DNA of 64,000 bases from Pecten maximus (GCF_902652985.1 NC_047026.1:13082001-13146000), one strand, 5' to 3'. Shown: positions 22,806 to 64,000, counted from the stretch's first letter. The notes: generated by a model not told the origin, from the sequence alone. Made by a program: numbers and translations.

Positions 22806-22844
22806 GTCCTGGTCCTAATGTTGGTCTGACGTTCCTTGTAAATC

Positions 22845-31400: not shown

Positions 31401-32367
31401 TCAACCATGTTTTATGTTCATATGATTCCAAATGATTTAGACCCCCCAACTCAAAAAATGGAAAATGTCGCTATGTACTTACCTCCCTGGTCTTTGGTGT
31501 GTGGGTGATGTCTTTAACTGGCTTGTTGTCGGTCTCGGTGACTGCGTCCTATAAAAATCAACAGTAAATAGTTAAATCGTCATTATCATCGCTATCTTCA
31601 CAATCATCGAAGTCGCTGTCATCGTCAATCGTTATTTCATTTTCATTTTTTCCTGTTTAATTCCGTCTGTGTTCGTATAATTCATCAAATGAAATAAGTT
31701 CATGAAAGTTTTTATATGCAATGTTAACTATAAAATGAGTTTAAAATAACATCCTAATGTGTAATTAAGACTTTTTAGCAAGACAAACATAAATGTATTG
31801 ATTAAGAAACAAAAGTTGGTTTAGAATGATTAGGACCATGATTTGTAGATGTAACAAATTTGTTTCTCTCTTTTCTTTTTTGTTTGTTTGCTTTCATGAT
31901 TATTAACGTTGTTACTTACAAACTCCATGCCTAGTCCCGAGTCCTCATCTTGTACGGGAGGGGGGTGGATGGCCTTCGCTGGGGGTGTCATGACGTCACA
32001 CAGATCCATAGGCTCGTCATCGTCAAACTTCAACAGGCCTAGGGGGCTGAACTGATGAGGAAAACAACATTAATAATTAAATAAAGCACAGAAACAGCAA
32101 ATAGATAGCAGTAGGTGTATGTGATGTATATCATAGTACAGGTAATATAATGTAGTAATGATATCATATTGAACTATTAAACTTTCACTTGATATATTTG
32201 TCAAGTATTAATGAATTTTGATATTTTAATAAAAATGGCAGATATAAGTGCTGCTTCATATTAATTTTGAAATAAAAATTTCAATGAATCCGATCGATCT
32301 TATCAAACCAACTTACCTCAAAACTCGTCTCTCCATACTCCATCTTGCTCAGTGCAGAAAAATCCAT
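28428..32367 (-). CDS. CDC25: M-phase inducer phosphatase Cdc25 (string-like), about 340 aa
   Basis: Exons 32317-32367, 31920-32051, 31483-31548, 31021-31170, 30488-30634, 29942-30040 (IDCRYPYEYDGGHIK), 29443-29570 (catalytic FHCEFSSERGP), 28910-29027 (YPLLNYPEVYLLHDGYKAF) and 28428-28559 (RSKSKSW). The ATG sits 4 nt after a splice acceptor (exon starts at 32371), so exon 1 lies further upstream. Confidence 0.95.
30845..30911 (+). repeat. Two-copy tandem duplication (~33 bp)
   Basis: TCGCTGTTTTTCCACTGTCAGACAGGGATGTCA x2. Confidence 0.85.
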
Positions 32368-40296: not shown

Positions 40297-40473
40297 TCAA
40301 ATGGAAGCAACTCTAAGTTCATACAGGGGTGATAAGCGAACAATGGATCGAAGTCCTGTGATTTTTCTTTTAATTTCATTAATCTATTTCTGTAAAAAAA
40401 ACAACTTCAATGACATCGCTACGATCTCAACATATCAGATTGGACACGTTTTTGTCATTTAATTAATCTCTGC

Positions 40474-41618
40474 TGATATTCAGATATATCAGAGTTAATT
40501 CCCTTCCCAGCTGGTATTCTGATCTAGCAGAGTTACGTCCCTTCCCTGATATTCTGATCTATCAGAGTTACTTCCCTTTCCTGATATTCTGATCTATCAG
40601 AGTTAATTCCCTTCCCTGATAATCTGATCTACCAGAGTTACGTCCCTTCCCTGATATTCTGATCTATCAGAGTTACTTCCCTTCCCTGTTGATATTCTGA
40701 TCTACCAGAGTTACGTCCCTTCCCTGTTGATATTCTGATCTATCAGAGTTACGTCCCTTCCCTGATCTTCTGATCTATCAGAGTTACTTCCCTTCCCTAT
40801 TGATATTCTGATCTATCAGAGTTACTTCCCTTCCCTGTTGATATTCTGATCTATCAGAGTTACTTCCCTTCCCTGATATTCTGATCTATCAGAGTTACTT
40901 CCCTTCCCTGATATTCTGATCTATCAGAGTTACTTCCCTTCCCTGATATTCTGATCTATCAGAATTACTTCCCTTCCCTGATATTCTGATCTATCAGAAT
41001 TACTTCCCTTCCCTGATATTCTGATCTCTCAGAGGTACTTCCCCTCCCTGTTGATATTCTGATCTATCAGAGTTACTTTCCCTTCCCTGTTGATATTCTG
41101 ATCTATCAGAGTTACGTCCCTTCCCTGATATTCTGATCTATCAGAGTTACGTCCCTCCCCTGATATTCTGATCTTCCAGAGTTACTTCCCTTCCCTGATA
41201 TTCTGATATACCAGAATTAATTCCCTTCCCTGATATTCTGATCTATCAGAGTTACGTCCCTTCCCTGATATTCTGATCTACAAGAGTTACTTCCCTTCCC
41301 TGATATTCTGATATACCAGAGTTAATTCCCTTCCCTGTTGATATTCTGATCTATCAGAGTTACTTCCCTTCCCTGATATTCTGATCTTTCAGAGTCACTT
41401 CCCTTCCCTGATATTCTGATATACCAGAGTTAATTCCCTTCCCTGATAGTCTGATCTACCAGAGTTACTTCCCTTCCCTGATATTCTGATCTATCAGAGT
41501 TACTTCCCTTCCCTGATATTCTGATCTACCAGAGTTACTTCCCTTCCCTGATATTCTGATCTATCAGAGTTACGTCCCTTCCCTGCTGATATTCTGAGCT
41601 ATCAGAGTTATTTCCCTT
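40474..41618 (+). repeat. Minisatellite, 35/38-bp unit, about 32 copies
   Basis: Unit CTGATATTCTGATCTATCAGAGTTACTTCCCTTCC, with +GTT variants. Confidence 0.97.
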
Positions 41619-41769
41619 CGCTTCACTCTATGGTGGAGCGACAGCCAATCCAAGTTTTCTCTGGCCCAGACACCATGTCAGACCACAGAGACATAAATAT
41701 AGAAATGAATCTCGGGCTAAGCGATAGCTTGACAATCGATTGTGGGCCGAGAATGGGATGGAAGTGCGC

Positions 41770-41905: not shown

Positions 41906-42735
41906 TGCGATCACCTTGTACTTACAAGATGAAAGCTGGTATTTTATATTGAATATTAAAAAATGTGAAATAAAATCAAATTGAATACTGTTTACAGTTT
42001 TGGATGTAGTTAAATTGATCATGTCACTGAGATTTGCTGTGTTTCGTTTTTCTGTCAAGGTCGACGTCGCCAAAGTCATATTGACTTGCGTGTATAAGAA
42101 TGCACTACATTTATTTCATTTTAATGATTCCGAGGACGGAAATGTAGACTTACATGATTTAATATGAACATATACTACAAAAATATCTAAGTCACTAAAT
42201 ATGATTTTATCTAAATGTCTATTGATTCGATATTATTTTAATCTTTGTATATGGAGCGGACATTGATAAGTTGCAATAATTTGTATCCGATCCTTTTATT
42301 CCTTTTAATATTAACGCAATAAAATTGATTTAAATCTACATAAAATGTACCACGATTTACAATACAGCGGCTTACCACTACATGAGTATATGTTAGATAT
42401 TTCTGAGCACCCTTCAATATTTTCTCGCTAAAATTAAAAATTCCCTTATTTAATTTTTTTTCATATATCGCCTGACCAACAAAAGTTGTCCGCTCATAGA
42501 CGCACTTTACCAAGCTATAATCACATAACTACATGAGATTCAAGATACCCTACGCAAGATTTTAGGTACCCATCTATTTCAAAATGTTCTATAACTGCTT
42601 ACTAATGGATATTTTAAAAGCTAATACTTGTTATTCTGTGGAATAAATTTCGCGTCAATCAATTTACAAACTCACAACCCGTTGTCTATGAGTTAGGAGT
42701 TACATACGCTCTCATACTAGCAAATAAATTCTTGC

Positions 42736-43430
42736 ACTTACCGCATAAACCTCTGTCCTTCCAATGTAAAGCACTAACTACGAAATGCATGGGTCCTAAC
42801 CCTGTCAGAAAGGTACGTGTTTCCGACCTAACGCGAGCTTTGGGTATTCCGGTGTGTACACACCTTTGGTTTCGGATAAACAAGCTGTCGGAAATGTGAC
42901 GAAGTTTATCCAAACACCTCGTCTCCTCCTGTCCCCTCCCGTTTGTCGGTTAAAACTACAAAAGGGGAATAGCCCGGTAGTTACAACACGGACACCGGTG
43001 GGCAGCCATTGAAGCCAGTATGTGGCCCCGCCACCTCCAAGCGCTCCCCCTCCACCGGGAGATAATCTGTGAGCGCGTGGGGGATGATTAGTCTGTGATT
43101 ACAAACACCTCGGGTATAAACACCGTTGAACGGGTGAGAGGAGAGGCGGGGCTTACGAAATCGATCGTCGGTGCCAGGGACGGCAGGTTGTCGGCTTGGA
43201 CCAGATTGGACAAAAAAGACTGACACAGGGTATTACTGTCGTCACAGGAAATAATGCTTTAAAAATCTGACGTAAAGTACGATTATAATTATTACAGGAC
43301 ATACTGTTCATATTAATAACGTATTCATGGCCATTAAAATCTGCAAATGTCGCGCCAGTCAGACGGGGGATCAGATTCTTAATGTCAACGCGGAATATTA
43401 TGATGACAGCGATTTAAAGTGCTTTTAGAA
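42736..43430 (-). promoter_or_regulatory. Promoter/first-exon module A1
   Basis: Homologous to A2-A4 (GC boxes, GAGATAATCTGTGAGCGCGTGGGGGATGATTAG core). Donor CG|GTAAGT at 42741. Confidence 0.6.
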
Positions 43431-44854
43431 TAATATTTTGTCAGTACTTTGATTGGGTTCCTCTCGTTTATACAACCTTGCTTTAGATATAACGAAGGAT
43501 CAAGCGGTGATAGCTTTTACAAAGTTAACTTTTTTTTTTTTTTTTTTTTAAATTTTTAATGCATCTGTTAGAAATGTAAACCCCTTATATCTCTTCAAAA
43601 ATGGCTTTGAAAAAAATAAATAAAAGGAATCGCATATTTAAACCAGTCAATAATAAGTTATCTAGGAAGTCGGACCTTGGGGTTTATTTTTTATTCTGGG
43701 TCAAATGATATCTAAGGGACATAACTCCCATAGAATTATCCCGTTCTGATTTATCAGAGTTACTTCCCCTCGTCTCAATAAAACAAACAACGTTTCAGAA
43801 AAAAATATCAATGCAGTTATAAATATTTCTCTTACATGAGAAATCTACCATAAGCCTTATAATGTCATCCTCTTCATATACATGTGTATACCTAGTTGTT
43901 AGTAGAGAATTTACAAAATTGATATTAGATAATTAGATTTTTACCGACCCATAGCTGGGTTTCGTTTCACCGATCGACTATATAAAATTAAAACCAAATT
44001 CTCCCTACCAAACGTATGGTATCTTCATGGAACATAAGATGGCTTTAATAAAATATTCACAGGAATTCGGAAGAACATTACTATTGATGAGAAAAATTAC
44101 ATTATATAACATCTGCAATGAATATATCTTCAGTGCCGAGAAAAAATATTTTCACTCCCTTGAATATCTCCGGTTTAAATGAAATTAAAAACTCAGCGTA
44201 AATAACAAAATAAATTCATAGCATGTGTAACCACTGTTAGTGTTTGTTTTAATCATGCCTGGAAGAATAAGAAACCTGTTTTACCTCATACTAAGTTACA
44301 CCAAAAACAAATATACCTGTGTATTCAGACCTGATTTAATGAAATGGAAAACTCGCCCAGGGAACGTGTATTATAATTGTACTGTTTTTAAAAATGACTG
44401 TTAATAGTTAATAAGATTATTGGGTTCGGTTGGAAAAACAACACAGAAATTATAATCTAAACTCCCAGTCGATGTAGGATGATGGAGAGAAATGCAGCAT
44501 CAGGACCCAGTATGGCCACTATGTGATGATAGATGAGATCTATTATTTATTCGTGTGTTATAATGATAATAAAACTGCTGAGATTGAAAAATATTATTTA
44601 TTATTTTATCATTTATTTAAAAATGCGATGAAACAGTGAGGTTTAAAATTACAATTCACGTTGTGTATATCATCATTTACTACCGATATTTGTGAATAGC
44701 ATTGTCTGGCATACACTTTAAGTGCGTAACATGCATGACCTTTTGTCAAACATAGAGTTTCTAGGTGTTTTCGAAATCTACTTAACTCGATGTTTATCTT
44801 TAAGTTGCTATGATACAAATCGTCGTTTGATATAGTTAACAGAATTTCTAAGGA

Positions 44855-46830
44855 TTGATTTTGATTTAAACATATTTTATTTGTCATTTACAATTTGTTA
44901 CAAAGGGATTGGGCACAAGTTTTCCAACTTATATTAAGCCCTCTCCCGATACAATTTTACATTGAGAAAAAATTCACATGATGGTAGTTTTATTTACATA
45001 TTTACAATCTAATTTTATAAGAAATAAAGAGAAAGAGAGAGAGAGACAGAAGGGGAGGGAGACGGAGAGAAAGGGGAAGAGAGGGGGAGTTGGAGGGGGG
45101 AAGGAAGAGAGAGACAGAAAGAGATTTTATAAGATATTGATACAAATAATCTTATATATATGGGATATACATGTATATCTAAATACTTCAAAAAGACAAA
45201 TAGTTTTGTGGTAGACCTAAGCGGACTCGGGCAACAATCACTTTGGTACACAATTCGACTTTCCTTTCGTTCAAACTTGTCTAATGTCTATGATAATCCA
45301 TGCCAGTGGTGTCTTCCTCCTTTTCTTTTCTGGTCCTTCATTTATAACATTTCACACACACCCGAATGTCACCCGAGTCCGCAAAGACAAAAATACAATG
45401 TACATTAATTTCCAATTAAGATATTTTTAAAATCTATTTGTATTTTTAATAAATAGTTGGGTTGATTGGCATATAGTTACATTTTCTTGATGAGAAAGTT
45501 CATTTTTTCCGAATAGCAGAAGTTGCAGGTCTAGTGGGATGAAATAATTTAGATCACGAAACAGTTGCAAACGCTGAACAGAGTAATTATTACATTCAAA
45601 AAAGAAATGATATGCATCTTCAACAGGGTGTCCACATTGGCAGTGTTTAAAATTAATCAAATTTGCATGAAATAAATCGTTGTTAAGAGTACTAGATCTG
45701 TTTCTTAATCTTGCATGCATAATGTTATGTTTTCTGTCACCAATTTGATAGTAGAAGGGAACTTTTGTGTCTGTAAAATTTTGAAGAGAATGTTTAAAGG
45801 CCGAGTACGTAACACTTTGTCGGATTTCGTTATCTAAATGATTCCATAGTTGGATAGTAGAGGGAAAGAAAGATGAATTAGTAAGATGTAAACGGTAATT
45901 TGGTAACGAGTAATTATTGGCATTTCTAAGGTTATATTGAGAATTTTCTGATACTAATGGTGGAAGAAGTGATGTTAGGTAATTTGGAGATAATTTATGT
46001 TTAATTTTATAAAAAAGCTGCAATTTTCGCCTAGAGCGTCTAATAGCAAGAGGTTCTAAACCACTTTCAGAATATAATGACTGTATACTAGTGTAAGATG
46101 GTAATCCCGTAATCACACGTGCAGCTTCTAGTTGAAGTTTTTCTAGTTTATCTGAGTCACCGAGACTACACCCATCCCATACCTCACAACAATATTCTAA
46201 TAATGGTATAATATACGAAGTATATATTCTATATAAAGTGTGGCGATTTAATATATATTTAAGCTTACGCAAAACACTTATCTGTTTCGATACCTTTTTA
46301 CAAATACCATCAATATGACTGGTCCATTTACAATTTCCGTCCAATATAACTCCCAAGTGCCTATGATTTTCTACGAAGTTCACACTAACATTATCAAATT
46401 TAATATCAATTTCTAAGGACGCACTGGTTTCAACAAATTTTGTTGAGTTAAGGATGTATATCTTTTAGCTTTTAATTTTAGGTATCAGATGAAAATCCAC
46501 GTAATAGGTTTTAGAAATATCATTAATGTGACATATCAATTTGAAATAAGATAACAGGATCTTGACATGGATCCATTTAATAATATATTTTATATGTCAA
46601 GCCCCTTTGAATTAGATCCTAGTGTCTGTCATACACTTAAATATATTTCTATTAAATAATCTGTCTAATTATTGTGATATTCACAAATCACGCCGTAGCT
46701 GTTTCTATATCAGAGTAAGAAAAGTAAAGTCAGTTTAGAGGCCACGAAAACAAGATTACCAGTTATATTATAGAAAAATAGGAGTCAAAAGACTGAGCCT
46801 TGTGGTATACCAGCATCAGTAGAGTTAATT
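44855..46830 (-). mobile_element. LINE (CR1/L2-clade-like) 3' portion; open ORF2 C-terminal segment 45427-46383
   Basis: ORF has post-RT motifs (HRHLGVILD, LEYCCEVW, LEKLQLEAARVITG) and a C-terminal CQCG...EDAYHFFFEC zinc knuckle. A decayed GIPQGS RT motif lies at ~46790-46812, and an AATAAA plus (AATC)n tail at ~44855-44882. Confidence 0.85.
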
Positions 46831-47043
46831 TGAGTGAGTTTTTAGTGAAAGTAAATTTCCTATTTTGTCACTGGTGTAGATGAATGCACTGGTTGCATTT
46901 ATACATACAATGTATTCCACAATAAGACAAAATATGCTAAAAATATAAACTTCAATCTACAGGTGACACTGAAATATAAGAAATACCAGTCCCGGGGAAA
47001 TATTTAATTAAAATGTAATAAATTCTCAGGCCAACCATCATTT

Positions 47044-47618
47044 AGCGTGGGAATCGAAGATTCTCACAAAGCAGGTGTTTTTCCTACTAATTCCATGTGT
47101 AAATTTGAGGGAGTTTTTAGTGAAAGTAAACGTCCTATTTTGTTACTGGTGATAAGGTGTTACGGATATTGCACGAACATATATCTTTATTAGGGGTCAG
47201 TACCGGGTGTCGGATATCGGGGGCCAGGTGAGAGAAACACCTTTCAGGACCCATTAGGGGCTGAGTACTCATGACAACATTGTCAGGTAAACTCGGATAT
47301 GGGCAGGTATATCTCTCAGTATGACCACTAATTAACACGGATTTTTACCTGTAATCAACCTCTACACCTCTGATGGGGCACTCATGGTGGAAACATATAG
47401 GGCAAGTCAACGTTAGTGTTTATCATCGACACTCAATATCATAGCTGTATCAATGGTTGAAATATTTGGTGACAATAACGAACCGATAATTTACTAAAAT
47501 TTATTTATTTTCTTCTTTCAAACCTTTTAGACTTTCCATTGCGAAAACTCAGAAAAAATTTTTTTATAGACTTCAGTTTGACAAACTTAGTAACTAAGAG
47601 TTTTGCTTCCCTGGATTA
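47044..47618. promoter_or_regulatory. Conserved element B1 (CSL site + E-box + 81-bp invariant core)
   Basis: AGCGTGGGAA at 47044; core 47182-47338 nearly identical to B2-B4. Confidence 0.6.
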
Positions 47619-48114
47619 ATTTTCAGCAATGAAAAACATGTAACTTATGCATACATTTCGAGTACAAAAATCAGAGTCCCACTGCGAAAGAAGGATTAAG
47701 CTAATTGGCTGAGTTACAATAATGCTAATGAGTTACTCATAACGAGATTATCGAGCACTCTTTGACGTCTTAATCTCCCCACAATCAGTGTCTTCAATAT
47801 CTACAGAGTTGTCGTTCCTGTCAATTGGTAAAATTTGATTTTCGACCGTTTTTCTGCACTAAATTTGATATAATCTTTCAACATTATTTTCTGTATTTAT
47901 CTTGGATAAATCTTATATTAAAAGTCTTCAATTTTGAAGAACCTCGTGTGTTTTATAAGCCGCAATTAAATGTTAATTTCTCGTGAATTTATTTATTTTT
48001 AATGGGGAGCATTTGGCATGTAATAATGACAGACTTATCCTAAAAAAACAACAACAACAACAAATAAAATAAATTTAAAAAAAAATTAAAAGCACACACA
48101 AATAGATTTACCCA

Positions 48115-48690
48115 CAAATTAAAATCTAACTCACCAAGTCTCTAGTCTCTGTTAGTTTCGCACTGTTCGAAAGCAAATCCCAACTGGCCAGTTCTACCAA
48201 AAACACGGGACTACCAAACCCAGCCACGTGTTGTTACTGTGTATATACAACCTGTCGGAATATTGACGAAATGGTCCAAACCTTCACCTCTGTCGGATAA
48301 ACTACAAAGTTTAAACACAGGTGGGCATTCCTTGAAGTCAGTATGTGGCCCCGCCCCCTCCACGCACTCCTCCTCCGTGGAAAGATAATCTGTGAGCGCG
48401 TGGGGGGTGATTAGTTTGTGATTACAACACCCCAGGGAGATATACACTGTCGGACAGGTGAGAGATAGGGGCGGGGTTTACGGGATGGCGTCATAGACGG
48501 ATATTGCGCCAGATTTGATAGAAAGACTTACACAGGGTTGTAAGGACGACACAGGGGATGGTACGATTATATCAAGGGATTATATCCATTTTAATATCAT
48601 ATTTGCATAAGTCAACAGAATATATGGCCATTAGGATTGGCAAGTGTCGCACCAGTAAAACAGGGGATCAAATTCCCAATTTCAACGAAA
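48115..48690 (-). promoter_or_regulatory. Promoter/first-exon module A2
   Basis: CCCCGCCCC and GGGGCGGGG boxes; donor TG|GTGAGT at 48134. Confidence 0.6.
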
Positions 48691-49399
48691 ACTTTCAGAT
48701 ATTTCTTCCATACTATAATTAAGATTGACTCAAATTCAAGAGTTCCATCATTTACCTTCCCTTTGTGTTACCGTTATATATAACGTAGCTTTATCTACAT
48801 GTTAACCAAAGGAGTTGGGTGCTGTCAGTCACAAACTTTCAAAAATCAGATATTCTTTGATTTTCTATTGATATCTAATATTTAACCAGCCAGAAAACCC
48901 TATCTCAAACCAATGTTTAGAATTCAAAAAATGGTAAGGATCAGATAAATCGCTTTCCCGTAAGAACGAGATCAAATTGGAAAAATGAGCTTGATTTAAC
49001 ATAAATTCAATATTTCTAAAAAAAAAATAGAAAAAAAATCAATAAAAAAAATCTTAATTAAACTTAATTCAAAGGGACATAACTCCTATAGCAATGAAAG
49101 TGCAAGGAAATACATAAATGGACAGAGGACTGGAAACTCATGCCAAGTCCATGCGTACTAGACAAAATAATGTTTGTTTTATAATAACGGGCATTCAAAG
49201 TCAAAAGTTATCAAGCTAACTTTACGGATGACATGAATGAGAATGCCATCAATGGATACATGAGAAGGACACATTCGGTTGAGCTTGTAAAATTTACTCG
49301 CAAGGATTTGGCTTTAAAAGAAAGACAACTTCTGTCGAAATCTAATTGGCTTTTGATTAATTAACTATGCATTTCTTACTCATTTTTTCTATTTTTTTT

Positions 49400-49965
49400 T
49401 TTCATTGTTTCGTTTGAATTTATTCTTTATCATTAAGCTATCAGAAATTGACGTTTCCAAATTTGTAGAGGCGAATCGAATATCACACTCTCCAAACAGT
49501 TTCACAGTTAATTTTCTTGCATCTGATGGCATTCCGTTGACTTTATTAGAAAACTCATCTCATCATATCAAAAGTTCTGCGGTTAGTGCCGTTTGAGAAA
49601 TATATAATCAGTGTAAAGAATCAATAAGAAAAACGCGCCTAGAGTTAAACTCGAATCAATATTCGAAACTCAATAAATTTGTAATAATGTGTTGCATCCA
49701 ATTGCACGAGAAAACTACATGTAATTATAAGTACATCCGGAATAAGTCACGCTCCAGTTTCGTCCGATTTTCCTAATTTAAGGAAATTATTTGACTACTT
49801 CTGATTGTAATTCTACATCGGACTCAGACAATTAAGATAACTAAGTGTCGTAAAAAGGTGAGAGAAAAACATACGCTCAATACCAATGTGTTATCTTAGA
49901 AAAGTTAGGGTCAGAATACTGATCCTTGGGTTATACCACCATGAGTATGAATTAATTTTAGAGGG
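49400..49965 (-). mobile_element. Highly decayed LINE RT remnant
   Basis: Minus strand GGTATAACCCAAGGATCAGTATTC (GxxQGSV-like) at ~49913-49937 and a CHQM-like segment near 49520. Same relative position as the RT remnant before B1. Confidence 0.4.
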
Positions 49966-50021
49966 TTCACATTGAATATAACTTGCTGACTGCGATCCTT
50001 CAAATCCATTGAAAATGTACA

Positions 50022-50232
50022 GTTTGGTTTGTTTGGTTTGTTTTTGTTTAACGTCCTATTAACAGCCAGGGTCACTTAAGGACGTGTCAGGTTTTGGAGG
50101 TGGAGGAAAGCCGGAGTACCCGGAGAAAAACCACCGGCCTACGGTCAGTACCTGGCAACTGCCCCACGTAGGTTTCGAACTCGCAACCTAGTGGTGGAGG
50201 GCTAGTGTTAAAGTGTCGGGACACCTTAACCA
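50022..50232 (-). mobile_element. Near full-length tRNA-derived SINE
   Basis: B box GAGTTCGAAACC, central TTTCTCCGGGTACTCCGGCTTTCCTCCAC domain and (CAAAC)n tail. Confidence 0.85.
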
Positions 50233-50416
50233 AGGTACAGGTACAGAAAGAAACACTACTTTATTTATAATGTAAAAAAGAGTATTTCTATTTCCATAGA
50301 TACATATTCTGTTTAAAATCTACAGTCATCTATCTTCAGGCTCAACAGAAACCTGAGAATTACTTAAATGTAACTATATATATATAATACTGTATCTATG
50401 ACCCCTTCAGAAACCT

Positions 50417-50702
50417 AGCGTGGGAAACCAAGATTCTTACAAACCAGATGTTTTCCTACTAATTCCCTATGTAAAGGCAGATCAGGCGTTGGGACGGATA
50501 TTGCACGTACATATACATTGTATCTTTATTAGGGGTCAGTACCGGGTGTCGGATTTCAGGGGCCAGGTGAGAGAAACACCTTTCAGGACCCATTAGGGGC
50601 TGAGTACTCATGACAACATTGTCAGGTAAACTCGGATATAGACAGGTATATCTCTCAGTATGACCACTAATTAACACTGAATTATACCCATAATTAATCT
50701 CT
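50417..50702. promoter_or_regulatory. Conserved element B2
   Basis: AGCGTGGGAA at 50417; core 50521-50678. Confidence 0.6.
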
Positions 50703-50950
50703 GTACATAGGATTATATTCCAAGATCGGTTTGGTCAAGTTCAACTTTTTCATTTTCACTCAGCCACACTTTGTGTGGAACAAGAGGTCACATTTATATT
50801 TATAAAATGCAGTGATTCACATATTCTTAAACTTTATCTTTGTACATATATGGTAAATACAGGATCCAAGTTATCCTATTTAACATGTTCAGATTCTTTA
50901 TTTCCTTGTGTTTTTCAACACATCAGAGAGACATTACAAAACAATACAAT

Positions 50951-51111
50951 GTAATATATTATGACACAATTCACATTTACAAAAGTACATGTCCATTACA
51001 CTTAATATACACATACATGTATAACATACAATGTACATGTAATATATTATGACACAATTCACATTTACAAAAGTACATGTCCATTACGCTTAATATACAC
51101 ATACATGTATA
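50951..51111 (+). repeat. Two-copy tandem duplication (~88-bp period)
   Basis: GTAATATATTATGACACAATTCACATTTACAAAAGTACATGTCCATTAC... repeated. Confidence 0.85.
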
Positions 51112-52094
51112 TGTATACGTACACTTTAGTATTACCATATATTATAGAAATGAACATAACGTCATCATGGCAGTACACAATAGTTCATGAACGTTAAAAA
51201 AATAGACTGGCATATAGTAAATTAAACAATTAAGTGATGTTATTACGTGGTTTTGTCGCTAAATAAAGGAATTTTCCTAGCTTACTCAATACAGAAACAT
51301 ATTGAACACTTAATAATTGTATCAACTTATAAACACTTGGTCTTCTATAATATTATGGCTTAATGTATGTAATTCGAATATTGTTATAAAAATTACATTT
51401 GAGAATAAAATGGTATTCATCCTCAATATCATTACCTTGACATAATGTACATATTCTTTGCTCTCTGCTGATTTCTGTATCTTGCTTGTTCTATATTGAG
51501 ATTGTGAGAGCTTAATCTAGATCTAGCTATTTGTTTTTTTATACTGGTCATCTATAGGCTTACACAAGTAGAACTGTAAAGAGAATTTATCAATAACATG
51601 TTGATATATTTTACCTTTAGAAATATTACTAATATTTGATAGAAGCTCCTCTTGATAAACATCGTAAAATCTTTGTTTAATCACATTAAAAGCTATTTTC
51701 TCGCTACATTCAGAATTCCATCAATAATTTATGTTAACACGGATATATGGCCCGATCAGTAAATCACCTGAGTTATACTAATGATAATGAGTTTCTCAGA
51801 CAAGATTACAGAGTACACCTTGACGTTTTAATCTCCACATCAATTAATATTCATGATACATAACTATCTATCTGAGTTGTCGTTCCTGTCAATCGGCAAA
51901 ACTTACTTGTTAAACACCTATACTTATGTTTATCTTAAATACACCTAAACTTTAAAGTATTAAAGAACCCGTATTAATTTGAAAGATCAGGCCGAAATCG
52001 TAAATAAATCTTAATTAAAACGTTTTGCATGAATATAATTTTTTAGTTTTACCATTTCTCTATATAGATTTAAAAATATAAACAAAATTTAAGA

Positions 52095-52745
52095 AGTGTT
52101 AAAATCTAACTCACCACGTTTGTAAAGATGTCTCTTCAAAATCGAATATCAGAATGATCAGGTTCCACCGAGCACGCGCGACTTCAAAACAAAGTCACGT
52201 GTTATTCCGGTGTTTATAGAGATACACGTGAATATACAACCTGTCGAAATTTTGACGAAATTGTCCAAACCCTCCCGTTTGTCGGTCAAATCTACAAAGG
52301 GGCACTGGTCCGGTAGATACAACACGGGTACAGGTGGACACAGGTGGGCAGTCATTGAAGCCAGCAGGAGACCCCGCCCCCTCCACGCGCGGGAGATAAT
52401 CTGTGAGCGCGTGGGGGATGATTAGTTTGTGATTACAAACACCTCAGGTATATACACCGTTAAACAGGTGAGAGAGAGGGGCGGGGCTTACGAAATCGTC
52501 CATCGGTGCCAGCGACGACGTGTTGTCGGCGTGGACCGAATTGGACGAAAAGACGCACAGGAAATGATTCTTTTAAATTCTTGCGTAAATAAACTTTCTA
52601 ATGTAAATGATAAGGGTTTATTAACGAGAGACTTATCCTGGCCCTTAAATCTAGGATAGTCGCGCCTGTCAGATTTGGGATCAGATTCCCAATGTCAACA
52701 AGCAATTGTCTTTACTGTGATAATAGTGATTTCAGGCGCTTTAAG
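52095..52745 (-). promoter_or_regulatory. Promoter/first-exon module A3
   Basis: Minus-strand TATAAA at 52213-52218, CACGTG boxes, GC boxes at ~52372 and ~52478, donor TG|GTGAGT at 52114. Confidence 0.65.
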
Positions 52746-54689
52746 CATGAATGTCAATTCTAGGACGAAAATACTATTCTTTATCTAATAGCTTGGTTCC
52801 AATCTCTTAGCAGTGATTTATTCTATATGTTACAGCTTATTTGCCCCTCATATTTGTCAAAGTGACTCTCGATTGCTTTACTTTAAAAGGAAACTTTCAG
52901 GAAGAATAGTTTTTTTTCTTTTCTTTACCCAATGATATCATCACGGACTTATTATATATATATCGGTGACATCATTAACCAAAATTGCAAAATTTAATGA
53001 AGCAATAAATCTGATTGAAACATTTACTAACTTGTCAATCATATGCAAATAACTTAACGCACTATCAAAAAATGAAATAGGTTCAGTTTTCATTGGATAT
53101 ACATATATATATATAAACATCTTTAAAAAAGCTGAACAAGAAATCTCATCGTAATCAGATCGTGTCATACCGTATTGTATGACATTTGCTTCGACATTTT
53201 ATTTACTTTTCTCGTCTTTCTTTTTATTTCTGTCTTACAATCATGTGTCGTTTGACAAACAATTAACAGTACGTTTTAATAGTCAGAATATAACACATTT
53301 ACACAAAACAGAAACCTTCAAATGGGAAAAGCTCCATCGAGTCCTTTCTTCGAAATAGCTGTATCAATACTTCGATTGTCAAAACGCCAATAGTCATTGT
53401 AGTTTACGATCGATATCAAAATTATAAACAAACAGCTAAGGACAAAAAGAAGTCTACATACGGATTAAAAGGATGAAATTAAACACGAGGAGCTTTATGA
53501 GAAAAGTCAAATTCTAGATTACACCCTGTCGCTATTTGGCATAGGCACAAGACGAGCCTGCGCATTCATGGAGTTTGAGAAAGATCAATACAGTAATTTT
53601 GTGAGATGAAGGGTGATTTTAACACTCCACTCTTCGGCTTGTGGTAAGTTCATCAGTATTTTCTAACACAGGGATTTGGCATGGTTCCCAGCCCTGTCAT
53701 ACATATACTAATAACGAAAGGGACATAACTCAAGCGAACTCAGTACATCTACTCATAGTAATAAGTATTGTCAATTTAACTGCATCAGTGGAGTCCCGAA
53801 AATTTCGATTAAGAATTATAGAATTTTCAAGACATAGAAGAGGGGTTGATGATTTATACACAGTGATTTTTATATTGCGTCTTCCCTTTCCGATTCAGAT
53901 TTTGTAATAGTGACAGATTTTTATACAAATAACTGAATAAAAAGTATGCGCAGATATCACAGGTACTCCACACAACTTCCCAATCCATTGACTGCCCCTA
54001 TTTGTACAATGATTTATTTGATTCATACACTGTATAGATAAATACATGGATGGTGAGTGGGAAATTTGTTCCAAGTCCCTGTGGTGTAGATGCACAGTGC
54101 AGAGTTTGGTATATTTCACATAAGTCTGAAGAATTTTCAGATCGGTTTAATTCACAAATCTTTGGAACATTTTCGCACAGTTGGGTTGCAGAAACAAATT
54201 TATTAAAAAGAAAATTAACAAATGTGGTATAGGACGTGCATATTTACTTTCTAATTGTAATTATCTAGTATAAATATATTCATTTCAAATATTGGACATT
54301 AATGCATTTGGATCACGGTTACATCGACGCTTTTCTTCACACCTCGAATGACACAGCATTATGATAAGGAGCAAACATTTAGATGCATGATTCCATGAGG
54401 CTACCATAAACAGCACAGAACTCGCGTCTTACTCACATAAGATTATGAGCATCATTTCACACGAGGGGTCTATCGTTAAGATAAACTTTATAGCTTTCAT
54501 GTCCATATGCATAAAAAATCTGAGAACATTTTAAAATGTATCAATATCATTGTGTGTTGTGATTAGCCTATTGGTGTTTGTTACCGCCAATTTGTTGAGG
54601 GTCATAAGAGAAAATATATCAATATAATTCATTGTTGCTACGAGCAAGAAACCGTGATTTGTGAAAACTCTTGAGACCTTTAGTTCTAC

Positions 54690-54985
54690 AGCGTGGGAAT
54701 CTAAAGTTTTCACAAAGCAGATGTTTTTCTTACTAATTCCCACTGTAAAGTGACAGATATGGTGTTTGTACGGATATTGTAAGTTTATATCAATCTTTAT
54801 TAGGGTCCAGTGCCGGGTGTCGGATATCAGGGGCCAGGTGAGAGAAACACCTTTCAGGACCCATTAGGGGCTGAGTACTCATGACAACATTGTCAGGTAA
54901 ACTCGGATATAGACATATATACCTCTCTCTCATTATGACCGCTAATTAACATTGATTTACACCTGTAATTAACCTTTACACCTGT
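54690..54985. promoter_or_regulatory. Conserved element B3
   Basis: AGCGTGGGAA at 54690; core ~54793-54951. Confidence 0.6.
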
Positions 54986-57019
54986 AGTCTGAGTTTTCAC
55001 GATGAGTTGAGACGATGTCAATATTCTATATCTCTCTTCCCAAGTTGTGACAGTTTTGTTAATTGAGGAATCAGACCGTGGAAACACCTACTGCTGTATA
55101 TGAACATCTTAGTTTATTATATTTTTAGTTACCTAGCAAGTTACCGATTTTACCGCCTACATGGTTCCGGCCAGTGTATTGTTTCGTTTTTGACCGACTG
55201 TCTCCTTATAAAACATTATCATTTTTATATAGGGATGAACTGCGTTCACGTTAATATGAACACAGTACGTTGGATACAGACGGATTCTTTCCAAGATTTA
55301 GGGTTGATGACGATGATCAAATACGTTGATAAACAGCTCCTCTATTAGCATCAAGCGTGTAACCTTGTAACTTATTCATTGTTATTTAATCTACGTTAAT
55401 TTACATCTTTAAAAATATAATTAAAAAGTCATCGAACATCATGTTATATCTATGAACAAATTTGAAAAAAAAACCGAAACACACAAAAAACTTTTTAAAA
55501 CTTCTAATAATTGAAAATACACGAAAGAAATGCTGTTAAGACCCATATAGCTTGACGGTTATGTTATCTAAAATGAATTTTGTGGCATTTATAGAAGAAA
55601 AAATGATAACAAAAGACATCTAGAGAAAGCCTAACATTTTCTCTTTGATTGTAGTAATTATATAGACCAGGGAATTTAAAGTTGTACCGTAATCTGAATG
55701 ATTTACACCACTATACCTGTAGGTATTACTATACATAGAAGTAATGACTTATATAATATAGAAGATAACGTAACAATTCACTAATTGACTCAGCAATCCA
55801 TTATGGACTCAAACAGATTTTGACCCAACCCCCTCCTCTCTCCCGCTGTCTCAAAAATCACTTAATTATGCCATCTTGTTAATATATAAACATGTATGTT
55901 GTAAAATTATATAGGGCTTAGTATAAGTTGGCTGACTTGTACCCAGTTTTCTTGTATATACAAAGATGAAAAGTAAAATATGTTTAAATCAAACGGAAAA
56001 GTCAACTGTAAACAAAAGTTAAATCAAATGATGACGCATATATTTTTGGTGAAATCGTAAATCTAAATTGGAATTTATCATCAAATGTTTATTCTCACAT
56101 TAATGTTTAACAGTACACAGCCAGCCATAAGTCCCTAGTATCTTTACGGAAAATATTTTGAAATGCAGAAAATCTTATTTAATAGTTGAATATCGTAATT
56201 TATGTGTGATAAAAGAAATATTGTTTATGCCTTTTTGAATATCTTGGGAAAATATGTCCCTCCTATGTCTACCCTGGAAGCTCAAGAAGATTGGTAACTT
56301 CGTCTACTTCTACCATTTAGCGACCTCCTTCAACATCGCGAAGATTATGCCGTGTATGTGTGTGGCATGGAATGAAAGGAATGGTGTTTAATATTGGTGA
56401 GATGCATTAGCTGATTTAAATGAAGAAATAGAGTCTTAAGAATTTGCAATTATCACTGACGAAATAATAAACTTAAAGCAAATTCAAATTTGATTTGTTA
56501 TGCGCTTACAATATACCAACAAATTCATAAGTATGTTTATTTTTATAGCAGTACGAATGGTCTGGAATGGAGACATATGTAGATATGGATACATAGCCTT
56601 ACAACTTAATCACCTGAGTTATACTAATGATAATGAGTTACTCAGACAAGATTACAGAGTACACCTTAACGTCTTATGATATCACCGGACAATCAGTGTG
56701 TTATATCTGTACAGAGTTATCGGTCCTGTCAAACGACGGCATATAAGACTTTAACGAACTGTGACTGGACGTTTGGGGTTTCGCACAACTGTCGTTTTAA
56801 GGCATCAAACACAATACAAACTTCAGTTTAACAAACGTAGACCAACTTTTAAAGAACGCGTAGATCTAGTTGAATATTTACCGCGGCTTTTTTTTCCGTA
56901 ACAGGATATATAATTTGCATATCAAATTCTTATTTATGTTGAAAATGGCAATGTAGACAATTTAAAATATTTTCAGGGATGCAAGATGTCCATTTGAAAA
57001 TATTAACACAGAACTGAAA

Positions 57020-57570
57020 TTTAACTCAGACTCACCACGTCTAAATGATCCGCAGTTTCGTTCCTTCCTCTTCAAAATCAAATACCATCTGATCGCAAGC
57101 TAACAAACACACGTGACTATCAAATACAGTCACGTGTTATTCTGGTGTTTATAGAGGTACACGTGAATATACAACCTGTCGAGATGTTGACGAAATTGTC
57201 CAAACCCTCCCGTTTGTCGGTCAAAATCTACAAAGGGGCACTGGTCCGGTAGATACAACACGGGTACAGGTGGACACAGGTGGGCAGTCATTGAAGCCAG
57301 CAGGAGACCCCGCCCCCTCCACGCTCTCCTCTTCCGCGGGGAGATTAATCCGTGAGCGCGTGGGGGATGATTAGTCTGTGATTACAACCATAGGCACTGT
57401 GATTACAACACCACAGGTAGATACACACCGCTAAACAGGTGACGGAGAGGGGCGGGGCTAAGGGATTGGTCATCAAATGACGGACGGCAGGTTGACGGCT
57501 TGGACGAACAGACTGACAACTTTCTTTTCAACTTTCTTTATTCAGGGTGTTAATGTTAAATGTCGACACA
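57020..57570 (-). promoter_or_regulatory. Promoter/first-exon module A4
   Basis: Minus-strand TATAAA at 57148-57153, GC boxes, donor TG|GTGAGT at 57035. Confidence 0.65.
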
Positions 57571-58037
57571 GGATACTGATATATATGCCGACCTGAATAT
57601 CGGTTATTAATATTATCCTTTATAAAAACATAAATAGTTAAAATCCACAATATATCGTAACTTACGAACGACAAGAGTCGCGACAATATGAATAAGCGAG
57701 AATATGAATAAGAACAGAATTCCGGTTAGTTGTACAGCCATTAGAAATGGGTTCAGGCTAGTTTTAGTACTTTAACACATCAAATGCATTTGTAACGAGA
57801 TTTCAACAAAGTTGGAAGCAATTCCATTATTGCTTAGACCGGACAGTAATTAACAGCAAATTGGTTATGTTATATTTAGGTTGAATCTACGCCAAAATGC
57901 AAGAAGTGTCAGATTTTACCTTTCATGAATGTACAAAAAATGTATATAAATCACCAAACTGAGTGTGAAATTATTGATTATAATATGCAAGTAAGTAGGT
58001 TTCACTAGTGGCGTTGAATGATTAGTAAATCAAAAAC

Positions 58038-58790
58038 ACAAGAGATCCCAGAGGGCTGTTGGTATCCACGATGATAACTTCAACTGTTACAATCTCAGAG
58101 ACCAATCCCCCTCCAGTCTCAATGTTTAACGTTCACGACTAGGGACTTCAGCTATACCGAGGTGGCCACCAGTCGGCCTTTTTATTTTCCTGGCCAGTAT
58201 CAATGTTGAATGAGTACAATTAGGTACCAAGGGAACCTTTGAGAAATATCCTTTCAGCACTTCCTAAGATAGCGATAACAATCTTCAAGTATCAAAATCC
58301 AAGATGGCCGTCATTCGGCCATGTTGTTTTCCTGATCAGTCTAAAAATTGAAGAGGCAAAATCTAGGGACTAAGGGTAACCAACACATTTGGCTTCAGAA
58401 ATATGCTGTTAACATTTCTCAAGAAACTTCCAACACCTAAAACACAATAAAGCCGCCAACATGTCAGATGTTTTAATGAATTCAAGTTCAGACCGATAGG
58501 AAACTTCACATAATGTTGAGAAATATAATTTCAGTGTTTTTCAGAGAAACAGCCTTAACAAACACTAAGGGTCAATGTCCATGATGACCGCCTGTCAGCA
58601 TTTTGTTTTGTTTTTGTTTGTTTTTTGTTTGTTTTTTTCGATCAGTCGCAAAACTTAAAGGGCCACAATTAGGGATCAAATGGGAGAAGGAATTTAGAAT
58701 TTAAGATACATCCGTTCGGTACTTCTCAAGGCAAAGTAATATACACCAGGTACTGTTTAGGAGCGAGCTTCAGACCACGGACAATGGCTG
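58038..58790. mobile_element. Degenerate Helentron-like element with CAAGATGGCCG subrepeats
   Basis: Starts ACAAGAGATCCCAGAGGG. Diverged internal repeats contain CAAGATGGCCGTCATTCGGCCATGTTG. Confidence 0.45.
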
Positions 58791-58945
58791 TTGTGAAAGA
58801 TGTGATGAAGGGGAAATGTACTTACAAATATATATATACATTATGTATATGTCATGTTTTTAGTGGTAGGAAAAAAGATACGTCTGAAGAAATTTTATTT
58901 ATTGTCAATATGAAGCATCTTTCAGCCTAGTACATTCAGAATATA

Positions 58946-59596
58946 AGCGTGGGAATGCAACGTTCTTACAAAGCAGATGTTTTTCCTATTAATTCCTAGT
59001 GTAAACGGAAGATACTGGGTGTTTGTACGGATATTGTACATATATCTTTATTAGGGGTCTGTACCGGGTGTCGGATATCAGGGGCCAGGTGAGAGAAACA
59101 CCTTTCAGGACCCATTAGGGGCTGAGTACTCATGACAACATTGTCAGGTAAACTCGGATATATATATAGACAGGTATATCTCTCAGTATGACCACTAATT
59201 AACACTGATTCTCGCCTCTAATTAACACTGGTTTACACCTGTAATTAACCTTTACACCTCTGATTGGGGCACTCATTGTGGAAACATACAGGGTCAAGTC
59301 AATGTTTGCGTTTATCATCGACGCTCAATAATATCTTTATCGATAGTTGAGACTTTACCAAATTCAATTATGTCCTTCTAGCAAACTTTATAGACTTTCA
59401 ATTGCGCAAATTCATTTTTAAGCCTCAGAAAAGGTTTATTTATAGACATCAGTTTGACAAACTTACTTGAGTAACTACATAAGAAGAGGGTTTTTTCCCT
59501 GGATTACTCGGTAACCTCGGATATAGACAGGTTTATCTCCTACTCTCGGTATGATCACTAATTAACACTAGAAACTTACACCCATAATTAATCTCT
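58946..59596. promoter_or_regulatory. Conserved element B4 plus partial fifth copy (59512-59596)
   Basis: AGCGTGGGAA at 58946; core 59043-59205. Homology to the B1 flank runs to ~59505, then the 3' end of the core is repeated. Confidence 0.6.
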
Positions 59597-61889
59597 AATC
59601 TAGTAAGTGGTCATTCGCAAGGGATTGGTTAAGTGAAAATATTTTATTTCCTTTCCCACTTTTGACATTTTTTTGTTAACACATGATCCTCATGGGGAAA
59701 GACTTGCGACTAGTAGGCTACCGGAATCATATCTATAACATCAGTACTATTCATATTGAGATTCTACTGCGTTTACGATGGTATGAACGCTATGGGCTAT
59801 ATACGTTTTATGTAGTATATTAGCGTTCATGACGTTATCAAATATATTTGCAATGATTTACGGCCATTTTAAGGAATCTATAGCTACCAGGACCATTATT
59901 TTTGTCACATTCCCGTTCTGTCAAAAGGTTTGCACGCACACTGATGCACAGACGATAACAAAATCTAAAGGTTAAGCCCTATCCTATGCTTGAAATTAAA
60001 AAATACTGGAAAGTGTTAATTTACTGCAAATTCTTCTTTAAATAATGACCTCTCTCTTTATCTCTCTCTTTATGGAGGTAATGTTAACAAGGCGACGAAA
60101 ATGACGAGTGCCCGCAGATAAACACTGTTATTAGTAAATATACTTGGTGGAGTTGTATTAAGTTTTCATTGAATTATGATAAAATGAAATTTTCCCTAAA
60201 TATTTGCAAATGCACATCCCAATCAACAACTGGTATTACGTCATATGAGTCAGATTTTGTTTTCAAACGAACTTAATCGTAAGTGCTATACTTAAAATGT
60301 CAAATGTACGACGAAACTCCGCGACTCACCATATATATATTTTTTTTAAATGCGTTTCAGCACGGATAATAAAATTATATAAGTTTGAATAATTTTTGGT
60401 GATAATAAGACTGCATTTGAATCAGGAATATAATTTTATTGGTGTGTCATTTTAATAGATACGTTTTGTACATCCACTTATTCAGCTTGCATTCAATCTT
60501 AATTTAGTTTCGTCTTAAGACCAATCACATACTTCATCTTGACCAGTAACGCCACCTTCTGCGTCATATCCGGGGCAAAAAAAAAAATTATACGGCTATG
60601 CCGAAAAATGCATGTTTCAGGTGAACACATTCAGCTCATTTATGTCACAGATATTGCACAAAATAATCATGGCATGTCCGCCTTCATACAAGCACGATGG
60701 ACCAACAGGGAGACTCGTCTCTGAGGCCGATTTGAGTGTAGGGACATATCCTCGACGGAACTATGTACTGCGCCTGTACAGCAGCTGTCTATAGAGAATG
60801 GACATTGTGGCAGTTTGTATGTTATGATTAAAACACGCATCAAAAATTCATGAAGTTGTTGGAACAATATGAAATGATATTTATTAGTTTCATTTCAAAA
60901 GCCGCTATTGCGGTGCCGTTTTACTATTTATTCCCATTTAGTGATATCACTTAGTCGTTTAGTTATCGCTAAATGGGAATACAAAGGGAAACGTAGAAAG
61001 TTTCTCTCCTCGCAGTGATTTTATCAATTAGTGTTACATAGATATGATTGTGCATTTTCGTTAATTAATCTATTTTTCATTACTTGTACTGTACGGTACG
61101 AAATCCTGACAACTTTCTTTTAGGGGATTTTCACTAAAAATGTGCGTTAAACTAGGAAGTTAATATAGTTATATTTTAAGTCGCCAATTAAATAATATAA
61201 CTGTTAAAATTACTTAACTTTTTAGACAAAAAGAGATGATTGATTAAGCCATTAGGCCTATACACTATATATGTAGAGTTATATATGCTATAGCATCCTC
61301 AAAGGGAAATGAAATGTGAGAGTTATCCCCCCTAGGATGGTATTGAGCATTATGATATAAAAAGATAGGGAACGAGTTCGATCAACAGGAATTCATTTCA
61401 TGAGGTCCTGCATGTTTAAAAGGATCTCTTACGAGTTCCCAAAAAGTTACCCATAGGATCGTCTGGGCGGTAAAATGGTTAATTCGGGACATCTGGGGAC
61501 ATTGGAGCGATCTGATATTGGGCGAAGAGAAGGTTCTCCCCAAATATATTGGGACATTGAGACTATTGTCTTGTTGAAATAAAAATATGTAACGTTATAT
61601 GTAAAAATGGGACATTGTATGTTTGTAGTGTAATGTGGGACAATGTTGATATTGGGCCGAAACGTCTGTAATTAATTGTCAACTAACTCGCCACAAAACT
61701 GCAACCAATCAAAAACGTTCTCTTATGCGTGTTCGGAAAATTATTTGTTTACATCCGGTATGCCGGTGGACCCAGAACAAGAAAAGTTATGTCAGTTAGA
61801 TTTTTAACCATATTTACTTCTGTATTTATCTATTCGAATTTTTAAAGTTATACATACATATTTTCATATACAATATATAAAATTCAGGG

Positions 61890-63996
61890 ATGACCTCCTA
61901 AAAAACGAAAACTTCCTGAATCATTTCAGGTAGGGAGCAATAAATTCTTACTTGGATGTAAAATCTATATTTTGAAAGCAAGTATTGAAAAGATGAGGTT
62001 GCAGATATTTACCTCTCAGCTTCAAAAATATGGCGGCATTTGCCATGAGCAATTAGAATCTGATACAACTCATTTAATTGTCGACGATAAAATGGATGCC
62101 GAGAGAATGTGCAGAATACTGAAAATGGACAAACCTCCAGAAAATATTGAAATATTGAAAACAAGTTGGTTAAGTTCATGTTTCAAATCTAAGGATATGG
62201 TGCCAACTAAAGGATTTGAATTAGATTTGTCAATTGTTGAAAAGAGGGATGTATTGGAGGAGAGTGACACAAAAATACCCAAAGATAAAGATGCTGCTAA
62301 TGATCCACCTACTGTAGATGGCGAAGTTAAGCCCGCAAAGGTTGGTGTCATGTTTCGTGCCTATAAGAAGCCAAAGGTTGAATCCGAAGGTCAATTTGAT
62401 GACCCAGACAGTGACTATATGGCAAGTGATAATGAAGAGGAAGATCAGATAGCTGGAGTGGACAGTGATCATACTTCAGCAAGCACAACTCCACAGACAT
62501 CTCCATGTAAAACCATACAGGTGAGTACAATGTCTCCACGAAAGCTTACGACTAAAGTTGGTTTACCTTGACCTGGGCGGCCAGAAGATGAATATGTAAA
62601 AGGAGAATAAGGGTGATCGCTTGATTGCATTGGCAGGAATTAAAGCCAAACACAGTCCATGAGCTATAGCCCGAATTATTCTGACATTTTATCAACTTTA
62701 TTTATATCAGTCTGGCATCAGTCAATGCGAGATCAATATTAAATAGGTCAATAAAACATTGGTCTGGTATGAGGTACAGACACCTCACTTCAGTAAGGGG
62801 TTTAACTCCTACTAATGAGCAGATGTCTTATAGTTTGCTGTCCCCATACTTGTGGTTCCCCCTTGTGGCTTTCCTCTAGAGAGAATATTCATACTCTGCC
62901 TACACTGCTCTCAGGACGACCATCTGTCAGAAATAATCTGTCCTTCGTCCAGAGCTACGTTACCGCAGCTAGCTTTCCTCTAACTTGGACAGGTACAAAT
63001 GTATCAATGTATTCTTGAGTGGATTATGCATTAATACCCCTGTAAGTTGTGTTCCATTGCATGTGCATGCTTATATATAGGTATACTAGTTATAGCTGAC
63101 ATGATAATTGTTTAATGTGATAGACAACGGACCCAGTAATCCCCTTGAGGAGTGTATGTGGTATTGTGGTACTGTCGAAACTTCATATGTGTGGCGTGTA
63201 CATAACTATTAAATATACTGTCAATATCACTTGACTGATGGAGCATTCTTAGCTCATAGAGCCCTTGATTATCACGCTGGAGACCCAAGTTGTATTCTTG
63301 TTTAGGTCAGTAATGTTTGTGTCTTCTAAGCCAAGAACATCATTTGCAAAATTTTGATGAGTCCCATGAATGCTTAGAGATAAAGTTTGAGTGAGTCCAT
63401 AGGAAAATCATGAGACCATGACTTATATACCAGGATGTGATAGGGGCTGGGGTAGTTATTTACAACTACCTAGTAGGGAGACTACCAAGCATTACTAAAA
63501 AAGGACCAGTATCACAATGGTATCACAATGAAATATTCATCACCAAATATAAATAATTGATTTGTTTACTTTTTTAATGGATGCATTATACTTCAGCTCT
63601 AAATTCATTTTGTTATTATTTATGTTTCAGACTTCTAGTTGGGTTTGTGCGCAGTCTTCCAAAAACACTCGTCCGAATTTAAACGAACATATCACAGACA
63701 AACTGGAGGTATGACAAACATGTAATTAAAAAAAAAAACCAAAAAACCTGGAAATAAATGATATGAAGTCATCTTAAGCATATATATATATAATTTTTTT
63801 TTTGTATAACTGACTTTTTTTTTTAAGTACATCACTTTATTTACCAAGTTGAGGTTTAAATTAAAATTTTCGTTCTTTAATATTTCAGGAAATGGTGAAG
63901 ACCTATGAGAGCACCAGTGATAAGTGGAGAGCGTACGGCTACCAGAAAGCCATTCAAGCTCTACGCAGATTACCTAAACCGATATCCTCATGGCAG
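61890..63996 (+). CDS. POLL: DNA polymerase lambda (X family), 5' part; continues beyond the window; start codon uncertain
   Basis: BRCT exon ending at 62520 (FTSQLQKYGG...TTHLIVD...ILKTSWLSSC). Exon 63631-63708 gives WVCAQSS...NEHITDKLE. Exon 63889-63996 gives DKWRAYGYQKAIQALR (8-kDa lyase domain). Confidence 0.92.
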
Positions 63997-64000
63997 GTAA

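Follow-up and report, generated by a model that had tools for sequence, protein, structure and literature searches.

The cdc25 gene string of Drosophila has regulatory modules that are distinct enhancers feeding one promoter and are not known to be tandem duplicates, and in UGT1A and the clustered protocadherins alpha/gamma the variable exons are long and coding, define protein diversity and have been demonstrated to be spliced to the constant exons. In the ribosomal DNA (rDNA) intergenic spacers of Xenopus and Drosophila, promoter copies and enhancers are tandemly duplicated upstream of the true promoter and the gene itself is not duplicated. Here we describe a locus of the scallop Pecten maximus, for which no previous literature was found, that can be set beside these systems. 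It lies in a window of 64,000 nt (C12:13,082,001-13,146,000; the whole stretch analysed, to which all positions below refer) and consists of an array of three kinds of homologous blocks, A, B and C, upstream of a minus-strand gene encoding an M-phase inducer phosphatase (Cdc25). We report that the array is a real, locus-specific four-fold tandem duplication of a distal cis-regulatory cassette of one cdc25 paralogue, and that this cassette is non-coding, linked to cdc25 and under strong constraint.

Like UGT1A and the protocadherins, the scallop array is a tandem series of homologous units that lie upstream of, and face, one set of constant exons, every unit having its own promoter-like region and a short putative exon with a 5' splice site at its end; it differs in that its putative leaders are non-coding, ~100 nt long and poorly conserved, and that two proximal promoters lie outside the array. 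The likeness to string lies in a long upstream region (>25 kb) with discrete conserved modules that are rich in homeodomain and E-box-type sites and of which several are alike in motif content, whereas in the scallop whole enhancer-plus-promoter-like cassettes are paralogous copies; in both comparisons the scallop arrangement is known from sequence. The rDNA spacers, in turn, are served by RNA polymerase I and consist of short, highly homogenised repeats, in contrast to the old and diverged scallop copies with their RNA polymerase II-type TATA, GC box and splice donor. Finally, genes with multiple untranslated first exons, such as this cdc25 with its annotated isoforms X1 to X3, have the same succession of TATA, short leader and GT donor to a common exon with the ATG start codon, but the annotated leaders are single-copy and near the gene, while the putative A leaders are 10-25 kb away, four-fold and so far without RNA support. 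We would class the array with tandemly duplicated cis-regulatory or alternative-promoter modules.

Repeat finding and self-BLAST of the window recovered all blocks, A (four copies), B (four) and C (three), between 42.7 and 59.6 kb, and confirmed the fixed order that a preliminary description of this DNA had assigned to them. Read along the minus strand, the order is B4-A4-C3-B3-A3-C2-B2-A2-C1-B1-A1, followed by cdc25, with a period of 3.4-5.4 kb; within a repeat unit A lies 1.4-3.6 kb on from B, and C 0.2-0.3 kb past the splice donor of A. All blocks are placed on the minus strand. The A blocks span 42742-43390 (A1), 48135-48690 (A2), 52115-52700 (A3) and 57036-57560 (A4), with self-BLAST extents of 42934-43390, 48116-48690, 52132-52700 and 57017-57505, respectively, and a pairwise identity of 67-82%. 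The B blocks, at 47031-47618 (B1), 50404-50719 (B2), 54677-55000 (B3) and 58933-59604 (B4), are 84-89% identical to each other (self-BLAST extents 47043-47618, 50406-50702, 54690-54986 and 58935-59596), and B4 carries partial internal re-duplications at 59215-59269 and 59510-59604. The conserved C elements at 47698-47841 (C1, ~300 nt downstream of the A2 donor), 51726-51909 (C2, ~210 nt downstream of the A3 donor) and 56572-56743 (C3, ~300 nt downstream of the A4 donor) were found by self-BLAST at 47709-47836, 51730-51904 and 56576-56732 with 75-85% identity; profile searches found no C after A1, and C belongs to units 2-4 only. Block-to-block E-values in the window self-BLAST range from 1e-17 to 1e-113, which is far beyond chance recurrence. 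In whole-genome searches (P. maximus, 918 Mb) A, B and C match only the locus upstream of cdc25. The preliminary description had itself pointed to high-copy dispersed A and B blocks as the sign of a transposon; genome-wide the blocks are single-locus, and a transposon or dispersed-repeat reading of A, B and C is rejected.

The A blocks are GC islands (GC 0.49-0.52 versus 0.31-0.34 in the spacers). Each can be described as a ~450-nt GC-rich island with GC box, E-box, GATA-like, homeodomain-like and TATA-like motifs, followed by a putative leader of ~80-105 nt that runs to a 5' splice site. Six of the eight GGGCGG sites of the window fall in A2-A4, A2-A4 and B show a 6- to 18-fold enrichment of CACCTG, and the longest perfect run shared by the A copies is 15 nt. 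A six-way alignment of the four Pecten copies with one homologue each from Argopecten irradians and Mizuhopecten yessoensis has an invariant core made up of two TAATCA-type sites, CCCACGCGCTCAC, a GATA-like GATTATC, a GGGGGCGGGG GC box, CTGGCTTCAATGACTGCCCACCTGT, CCGACAAACGGGAGGG and TTCGTCA, together with a conserved TATA-like CGACAGGTTGTATAT (42876-42890 in A1, 48243-48257 in A2, 52232-52246 in A3 and 57167-57181 in A4). In all six sequences the donors lie 108-134 nt past this motif; the putative leader of A1 would be at most 134 nt. Positions 42741 (just below the A1 block), 48134, 52114 and 57035 are each the G of a minus-strand GTRAGT; the preliminary description had these four coordinates exactly right, and the TATA-like-to-donor polarity agrees with its claim that the A blocks face the minus strand, toward cdc25.

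The donor reads G|GTAAGT in A1 and Argopecten, G|GTAGGT in Mizuhopecten and G|GTGAGT in A2-A4, and a GTRAGT or GTAGGT is found at the same alignment column or within ~25 nt in six of six sequences, in surroundings that are otherwise poorly conserved. On the gene strand GTRAGT has a background of 0.58 per kb, corresponding to P ~0.02 per 40-nt window per sequence. That the site has been kept in no fewer than four independent lineages is, as judged from the alignment, good evidence for a functional exon-intron boundary. By composition the A blocks thus appear promoter-like, with a conserved predicted 5' splice site that faces cdc25, and at the sequence level they form a tandem series in which a promoter-like region is followed by a putative first exon with a 5' splice site at its end, all directed toward common exons. 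The leaders do not encode a variable part of the protein: no conserved open reading frame (ORF) was found in them, A2 and A3 have no ATG at all, and A1 would add three residues at most.

In the B blocks a near-invariant core of 120 nt (47182-47302 in B1, 50521-50641 in B2, 54792-54912 in B3 and 59043-59163 in B4) is 95-98% identical among the four copies, compared with 67-92% in the flanks, and contains an 81-nt run without any difference in all four (47220-47300, 50559-50639, 54830-54910 and 59081-59161, respectively). The blocks are rich in TAATTA (2.7-8.9 per kb versus 1.0) and CACCTG (3-9 per kb versus 0.5) and carry a TGACAATGTTGTCA palindrome. We read B as a putative enhancer of ~300 nt under very strong constraint at the DNA level. 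Two other readings of B were tried and rejected: as a coding exon it has an open frame, but the few substitutions that occur are residue-changing and Pfam gives no hit, and as a structured RNA it has no Rfam match and fold z-scores of +0.2 to -1.55 relative to shuffles. The C elements, ~150 nt long, contain cAMP response element (CRE)-like and palindromic sites; an exon reading of C was discarded, there being no acceptor or donor pattern.

The orthologous loci of A. irradians and M. yessoensis were reached via orthologous proteins, and the upstream comparison covers flanks of ~10 kb, reaching position 29,782,011 of CM084274.1 in Argopecten and position 610,888 of NEDP02003088.1 in Mizuhopecten. 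In Argopecten cdc25 is followed by DDRGK, as in the Pecten window. Each of the two loci has one A homologue upstream of the cdc25 ATG, at 9.7 kb in Argopecten (235-550 of the locus sequence L012) and at 8.7 kb in Mizuhopecten (1223-1524 of L013); both are in the same orientation as in Pecten, 75-80% identical, and match A1 best. The Mizuhopecten locus sequence opens with a B tail situated 1.2 kb upstream of the A copy (200 shuffles yielded no hit at all), which argues that the order B-then-A is ancestral. The cassette thus has the properties of a conserved cis-regulatory module, i.e. it is non-coding and has kept position and orientation beside the orthologous cdc25. A tree of the A copies separates {A2, A3, A4} from {A1, Argopecten, Mizuhopecten} with support 99/98; the branch uniting the four Pecten copies has a support of only 69/57, and the divergence of A2-A4 may be older or younger than that of the genera. 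The path between A1 and A3 is 0.42 substitutions per site compared with 0.61 between A1 and Argopecten, which suggests that the duplication is old. From these comparisons, unit 1 (B1-A1) appears to be the ancestral copy common to the other scallop genera and A2-A4 appear to derive from one old duplicate, units 2-4 probably having been made by unequal crossing-over. The preliminary description had attributed the duplication to this animal, which does not hold, the B-A unit being ancestral and the extra copies old. Its proposal that only the cassette and not the coding region was duplicated is borne out, since no remnants of cdc25 exons or of the proximal promoters were detected in the array by tblastn (E<=10) or blastn (word size 7). 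Mizuhopecten has instead three tandem copies of the cdc25 gene body with ~1 kb of proximal promoter (NEDP02003088.1 559731-610888; L013 and L014), the middle copy lacking the first exons, and A and B are present ahead of the most upstream copy only. Mizuhopecten has duplicated the gene body and Pecten only the distal cassette, i.e. the two have taken opposite routes.

The exons of the Pecten cdc25 gene from 32371 down to 28431 match P. maximus RefSeq proteins exactly. The common ATG exon (32317-32371, minus strand) begins at a splice acceptor at 32371, as the preliminary description stated, with a pyrimidine tract, cag and then aaagATGG, and is followed by further coding exons down to 28431. 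Three annotated isoforms differ solely in their 5' exons: X1 (381 aa) has a coding first exon ending at 32501, ~130 nt upstream of 32371; X2 (351 aa) has an exon at ~33667-33760 behind a TATA box near 33790; and X3 (340 aa; XP_033756997.1) starts translation at the exon-2 ATG. Mizuhopecten has four variants (XP_021355621-624). The proximal promoter P1 with the X1 first exon occupies 32501-32970 (minus strand; CCAAT near 32885, TATAAAGG near 32577), and the promoter module P2 with the X2 first exon 33666-34440 (minus strand; donor at 33666). Both regions are strongly conserved in Argopecten and Mizuhopecten; across the three genera 33.64-34.44 kb has 82% column identity over ~800 nt, including TATA and GT donor. 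The argument that the ATG exon needs an upstream exon is therefore correct, but the A blocks need not supply it, since annotated and conserved first exons exist at 32.5 and 33.7 kb. Argopecten and Mizuhopecten share the X2 exon, its TATA box and its donor but not the X2 ATG (33668-33694, minus strand), and the X2 exon would thus in effect be a non-coding alternative first exon; the X2 N-terminal extension, MKNKDIVLPRK, is probably an annotation by-product of this non-coding leader. Between A1 and the gene there is also a conserved non-coding island (36386-36659, minus strand), 73-80% identical in Argopecten and Mizuhopecten, with repeated CCCCATAGGGCC-type motifs.

P. maximus has at least ten cdc25 paralogues, most of them on the same chromosome, so the gene studied here is one family member among them and not the one mitotic trigger of the preliminary description. 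Further paralogue clusters are present on C12 near 1.86, 16.6-16.9 and 33.7-33.9 Mb, and the family is markedly expanded in scallops and other bivalves. A Ylistrum balloti locus (L011) was left out of the synteny comparison; it holds the orthologue of a different paralogue (P0151) and is without A, B and C. In this locus (11643-11870) two exons are 6 nt apart, compared with ~450 nt in the cdc25 of the window, which suggests, at the level of gene structure, an intron loss in the P0002/P0151 paralogue lineage.

Our favoured interpretation, to which we give a probability of roughly one half, is that the duplicated cassettes contain distal alternative promoters with non-coding leader exons, each driven by its own B. 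Each A would be a condition-specific promoter whose transcript provides a non-coding leader exon, joined by splicing either to the 33.7-kb exon or to the acceptor of the common ATG exon at 32371; C would be an intronic element of units 2-4, and the A promoters would give the gene further regulatory inputs beyond those of the two annotated proximal promoters. The annotated 33.7-kb first exon, with its TATA, ~85 nt and GT, conserved in three genera, has an A-like layout and counts in favour of this interpretation. Spliced leaders from A2-A4 would yield the 340-aa isoform, as would a short leader from a proximal promoter. A fuller version, in which all four A are active and differently regulated, each is paired with a near-invariant B, and a promoter-choice array of leaders, grown from a single B-A unit, runs one cdc25 paralogue, we regard as unlikely.

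Several observations weigh against alternative promoters in the A blocks. The ATG exon is already served by two conserved TATA-bearing proximal promoters, and by frame arithmetic the splicing of an A1 leader at 42741 would bring in an in-frame ATG, 5 nt ahead of the donor, that is seen in none of the three annotated isoforms. Assembled RNA contigs (Logan) of four RNA-type runs were compared over 42600-48599, i.e. A1, a transposon copy, B1, C1 and A2. No contig was found on A1, on the leader or promoter of A2 or on the B1 core, and none contained a splice joint, a weak negative given that assembled contigs are evidence of presence and not of absence and that cdc25 expression in these four runs is unverified; the transcription and splicing from the A donors that the preliminary description had predicted is not supported by these contigs. 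All substantial coverage is on the transposon, and one run gave two contigs of depth 2 (47477-47693 and 47891-48034) that are possibly traces of pre-mRNA or genomic DNA. For 48050-57650 the RNA-type runs contained only 1-4% of the sampled words, which the repeats at 50.0, 50.9-51.7 and 55.9 kb are sufficient to account for. Moreover, no fragment proteins or full-length transcript-derived proteins of this cdc25 are on record (no match to the exact 340-aa isoform sequence, nor to exon 3 in a search for fragments), and the near-identity of the B cores could owe something to gene conversion and not to selection only. No processed retrocopy preserving a leader was found.

The same observations bear on the possibility that the cassettes are enhancers only, i.e. 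that A, B and C are duplicated distal (redundant or 'shadow') enhancers acting on P1 and P2, that no stable spliced transcript arises from A, and that the GT sites of A do no more than bind U1 on short enhancer RNAs. This is consistent with the lack of RNA contigs on A1 and A2 in the four runs and with the two conserved proximal promoters already present, and within A conservation is highest in motif clusters that lie upstream of the TATA-like element, the 'leader' being poorly conserved. Enhancers alone would leave unexplained, however, that the 5' splice site has been kept in six sequences and three genera, within fast-evolving surroundings and at a fixed distance from the TATA-like motif, and we consider this alternative possible though somewhat unlikely.

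Distinctly less probable, in our judgement, is that the A blocks are promoters of independent non-coding RNAs, with a first exon spliced to unannotated exons, which may act in cis on cdc25. The promoter-like layout and the conserved donor of A would suit such RNAs, further conserved non-coding islands are found downstream (e.g. 36386-36659), and the annotated cdc25 isoforms can do without A; yet no contigs were seen in the four RNA-type runs, and both the orientation and the distance of A relative to cdc25 have been kept in three genera.

On the far side of the array the neighbour is a divergent DNA polymerase lambda-like gene on the plus strand, with homology from 61705 (61705-64000), a BRCT exon at 61894-62568 and its 5' end near 61.7-61.9 kb. 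That the array regulates this gene, or gives first exons to it, is very improbable: B4 is only ~2 kb from its 5' region, but the TATA-to-donor polarity of A points away from it, and the Mizuhopecten polymerase gene is on a different scaffold, where it lies head-to-head with FANCI and has none of the three blocks within 10 kb, while A and B remain with cdc25. The cassette, as far as this comparison goes, appears to travel with cdc25 and not with the polymerase gene. The Mizuhopecten polymerase model comes in two pieces, of 154 and 196 aa (L015), and the position of the gene reflects either a break in synteny or a different scaffolding in the two genera. Least credible of all, despite the three tandem cdc25 copies of Mizuhopecten, is that the blocks are relics of whole-gene tandem duplicates with decayed coding parts, a mobile element or an assembly artefact, given that the array has no trace of a cdc25 exon or proximal promoter at permissive thresholds, that Mizuhopecten copied the gene body and not A or B, that A, B and C are single-locus, and that the copies (67-89% identical) are far too diverged for collapsed haplotypes.

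The spacers between the blocks are mostly unalignable, as had been described, largely because each has independently acquired different mobile elements. Spacer 1 contains a truncated mobile-element copy (44858-46411, minus strand), which lies outside the cassette and accounts for the longer unit 1. The element has more than 8000 candidate places in the genome, some copies being 100% identical at the protein level, its family includes full or intact ORFs of up to 1141 aa, and no Pfam match was obtained. In all four runs it is covered by RNA contigs, whose depth reaches 272 at its end and which have loose ends at both borders; it is a very abundant, recently active and apparently still active mobile element. 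A dispersed repeat (50874-51732, no strand assigned) is inserted between B2 and C2, and a second young dispersed repeat of ~225 nt lies at 50008-50232. Just below B4, a segment of ~150 nt (58238-58388) matches an Argopecten tandem array of ~155-nt units downstream of DDRGK (L012 21945-22994), and a copy is also present in Mizuhopecten (L014 23062-23133). Two satellites were seen outside the array. Between A1 and cdc25 there are ~35 units of a 35-nt satellite (40404-41655), which may have grown from a conserved seed; Argopecten has one unit-like match at the corresponding place (L012 1803-1838). Downstream of cdc25, a 58-nt minisatellite with more than 50 units (22800-26100, minus strand) has a frame that is open for 45-65 codons at a time.

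The 81-nt run, unchanged in four old paralogous copies, offers a well-defined target in the search for its binding factor. Should the units be redundant enhancers only, the array would illustrate, in a well-delimited but ordinary way, the duplication of cis-regulatory modules. Were the A units active promoters, it would be a clear instance in nature of regulation evolving through an enhancer-promoter cassette that was tandemly duplicated while the gene was not, and with the gene-body duplication of Mizuhopecten as a sister-lineage contrast, two routes to more cdc25 regulation or dosage could be compared at one locus. Active A units would also mean that a protocadherin- or UGT1A-like layout serves the transcriptional control of a cell-cycle phosphatase and not protein diversity.

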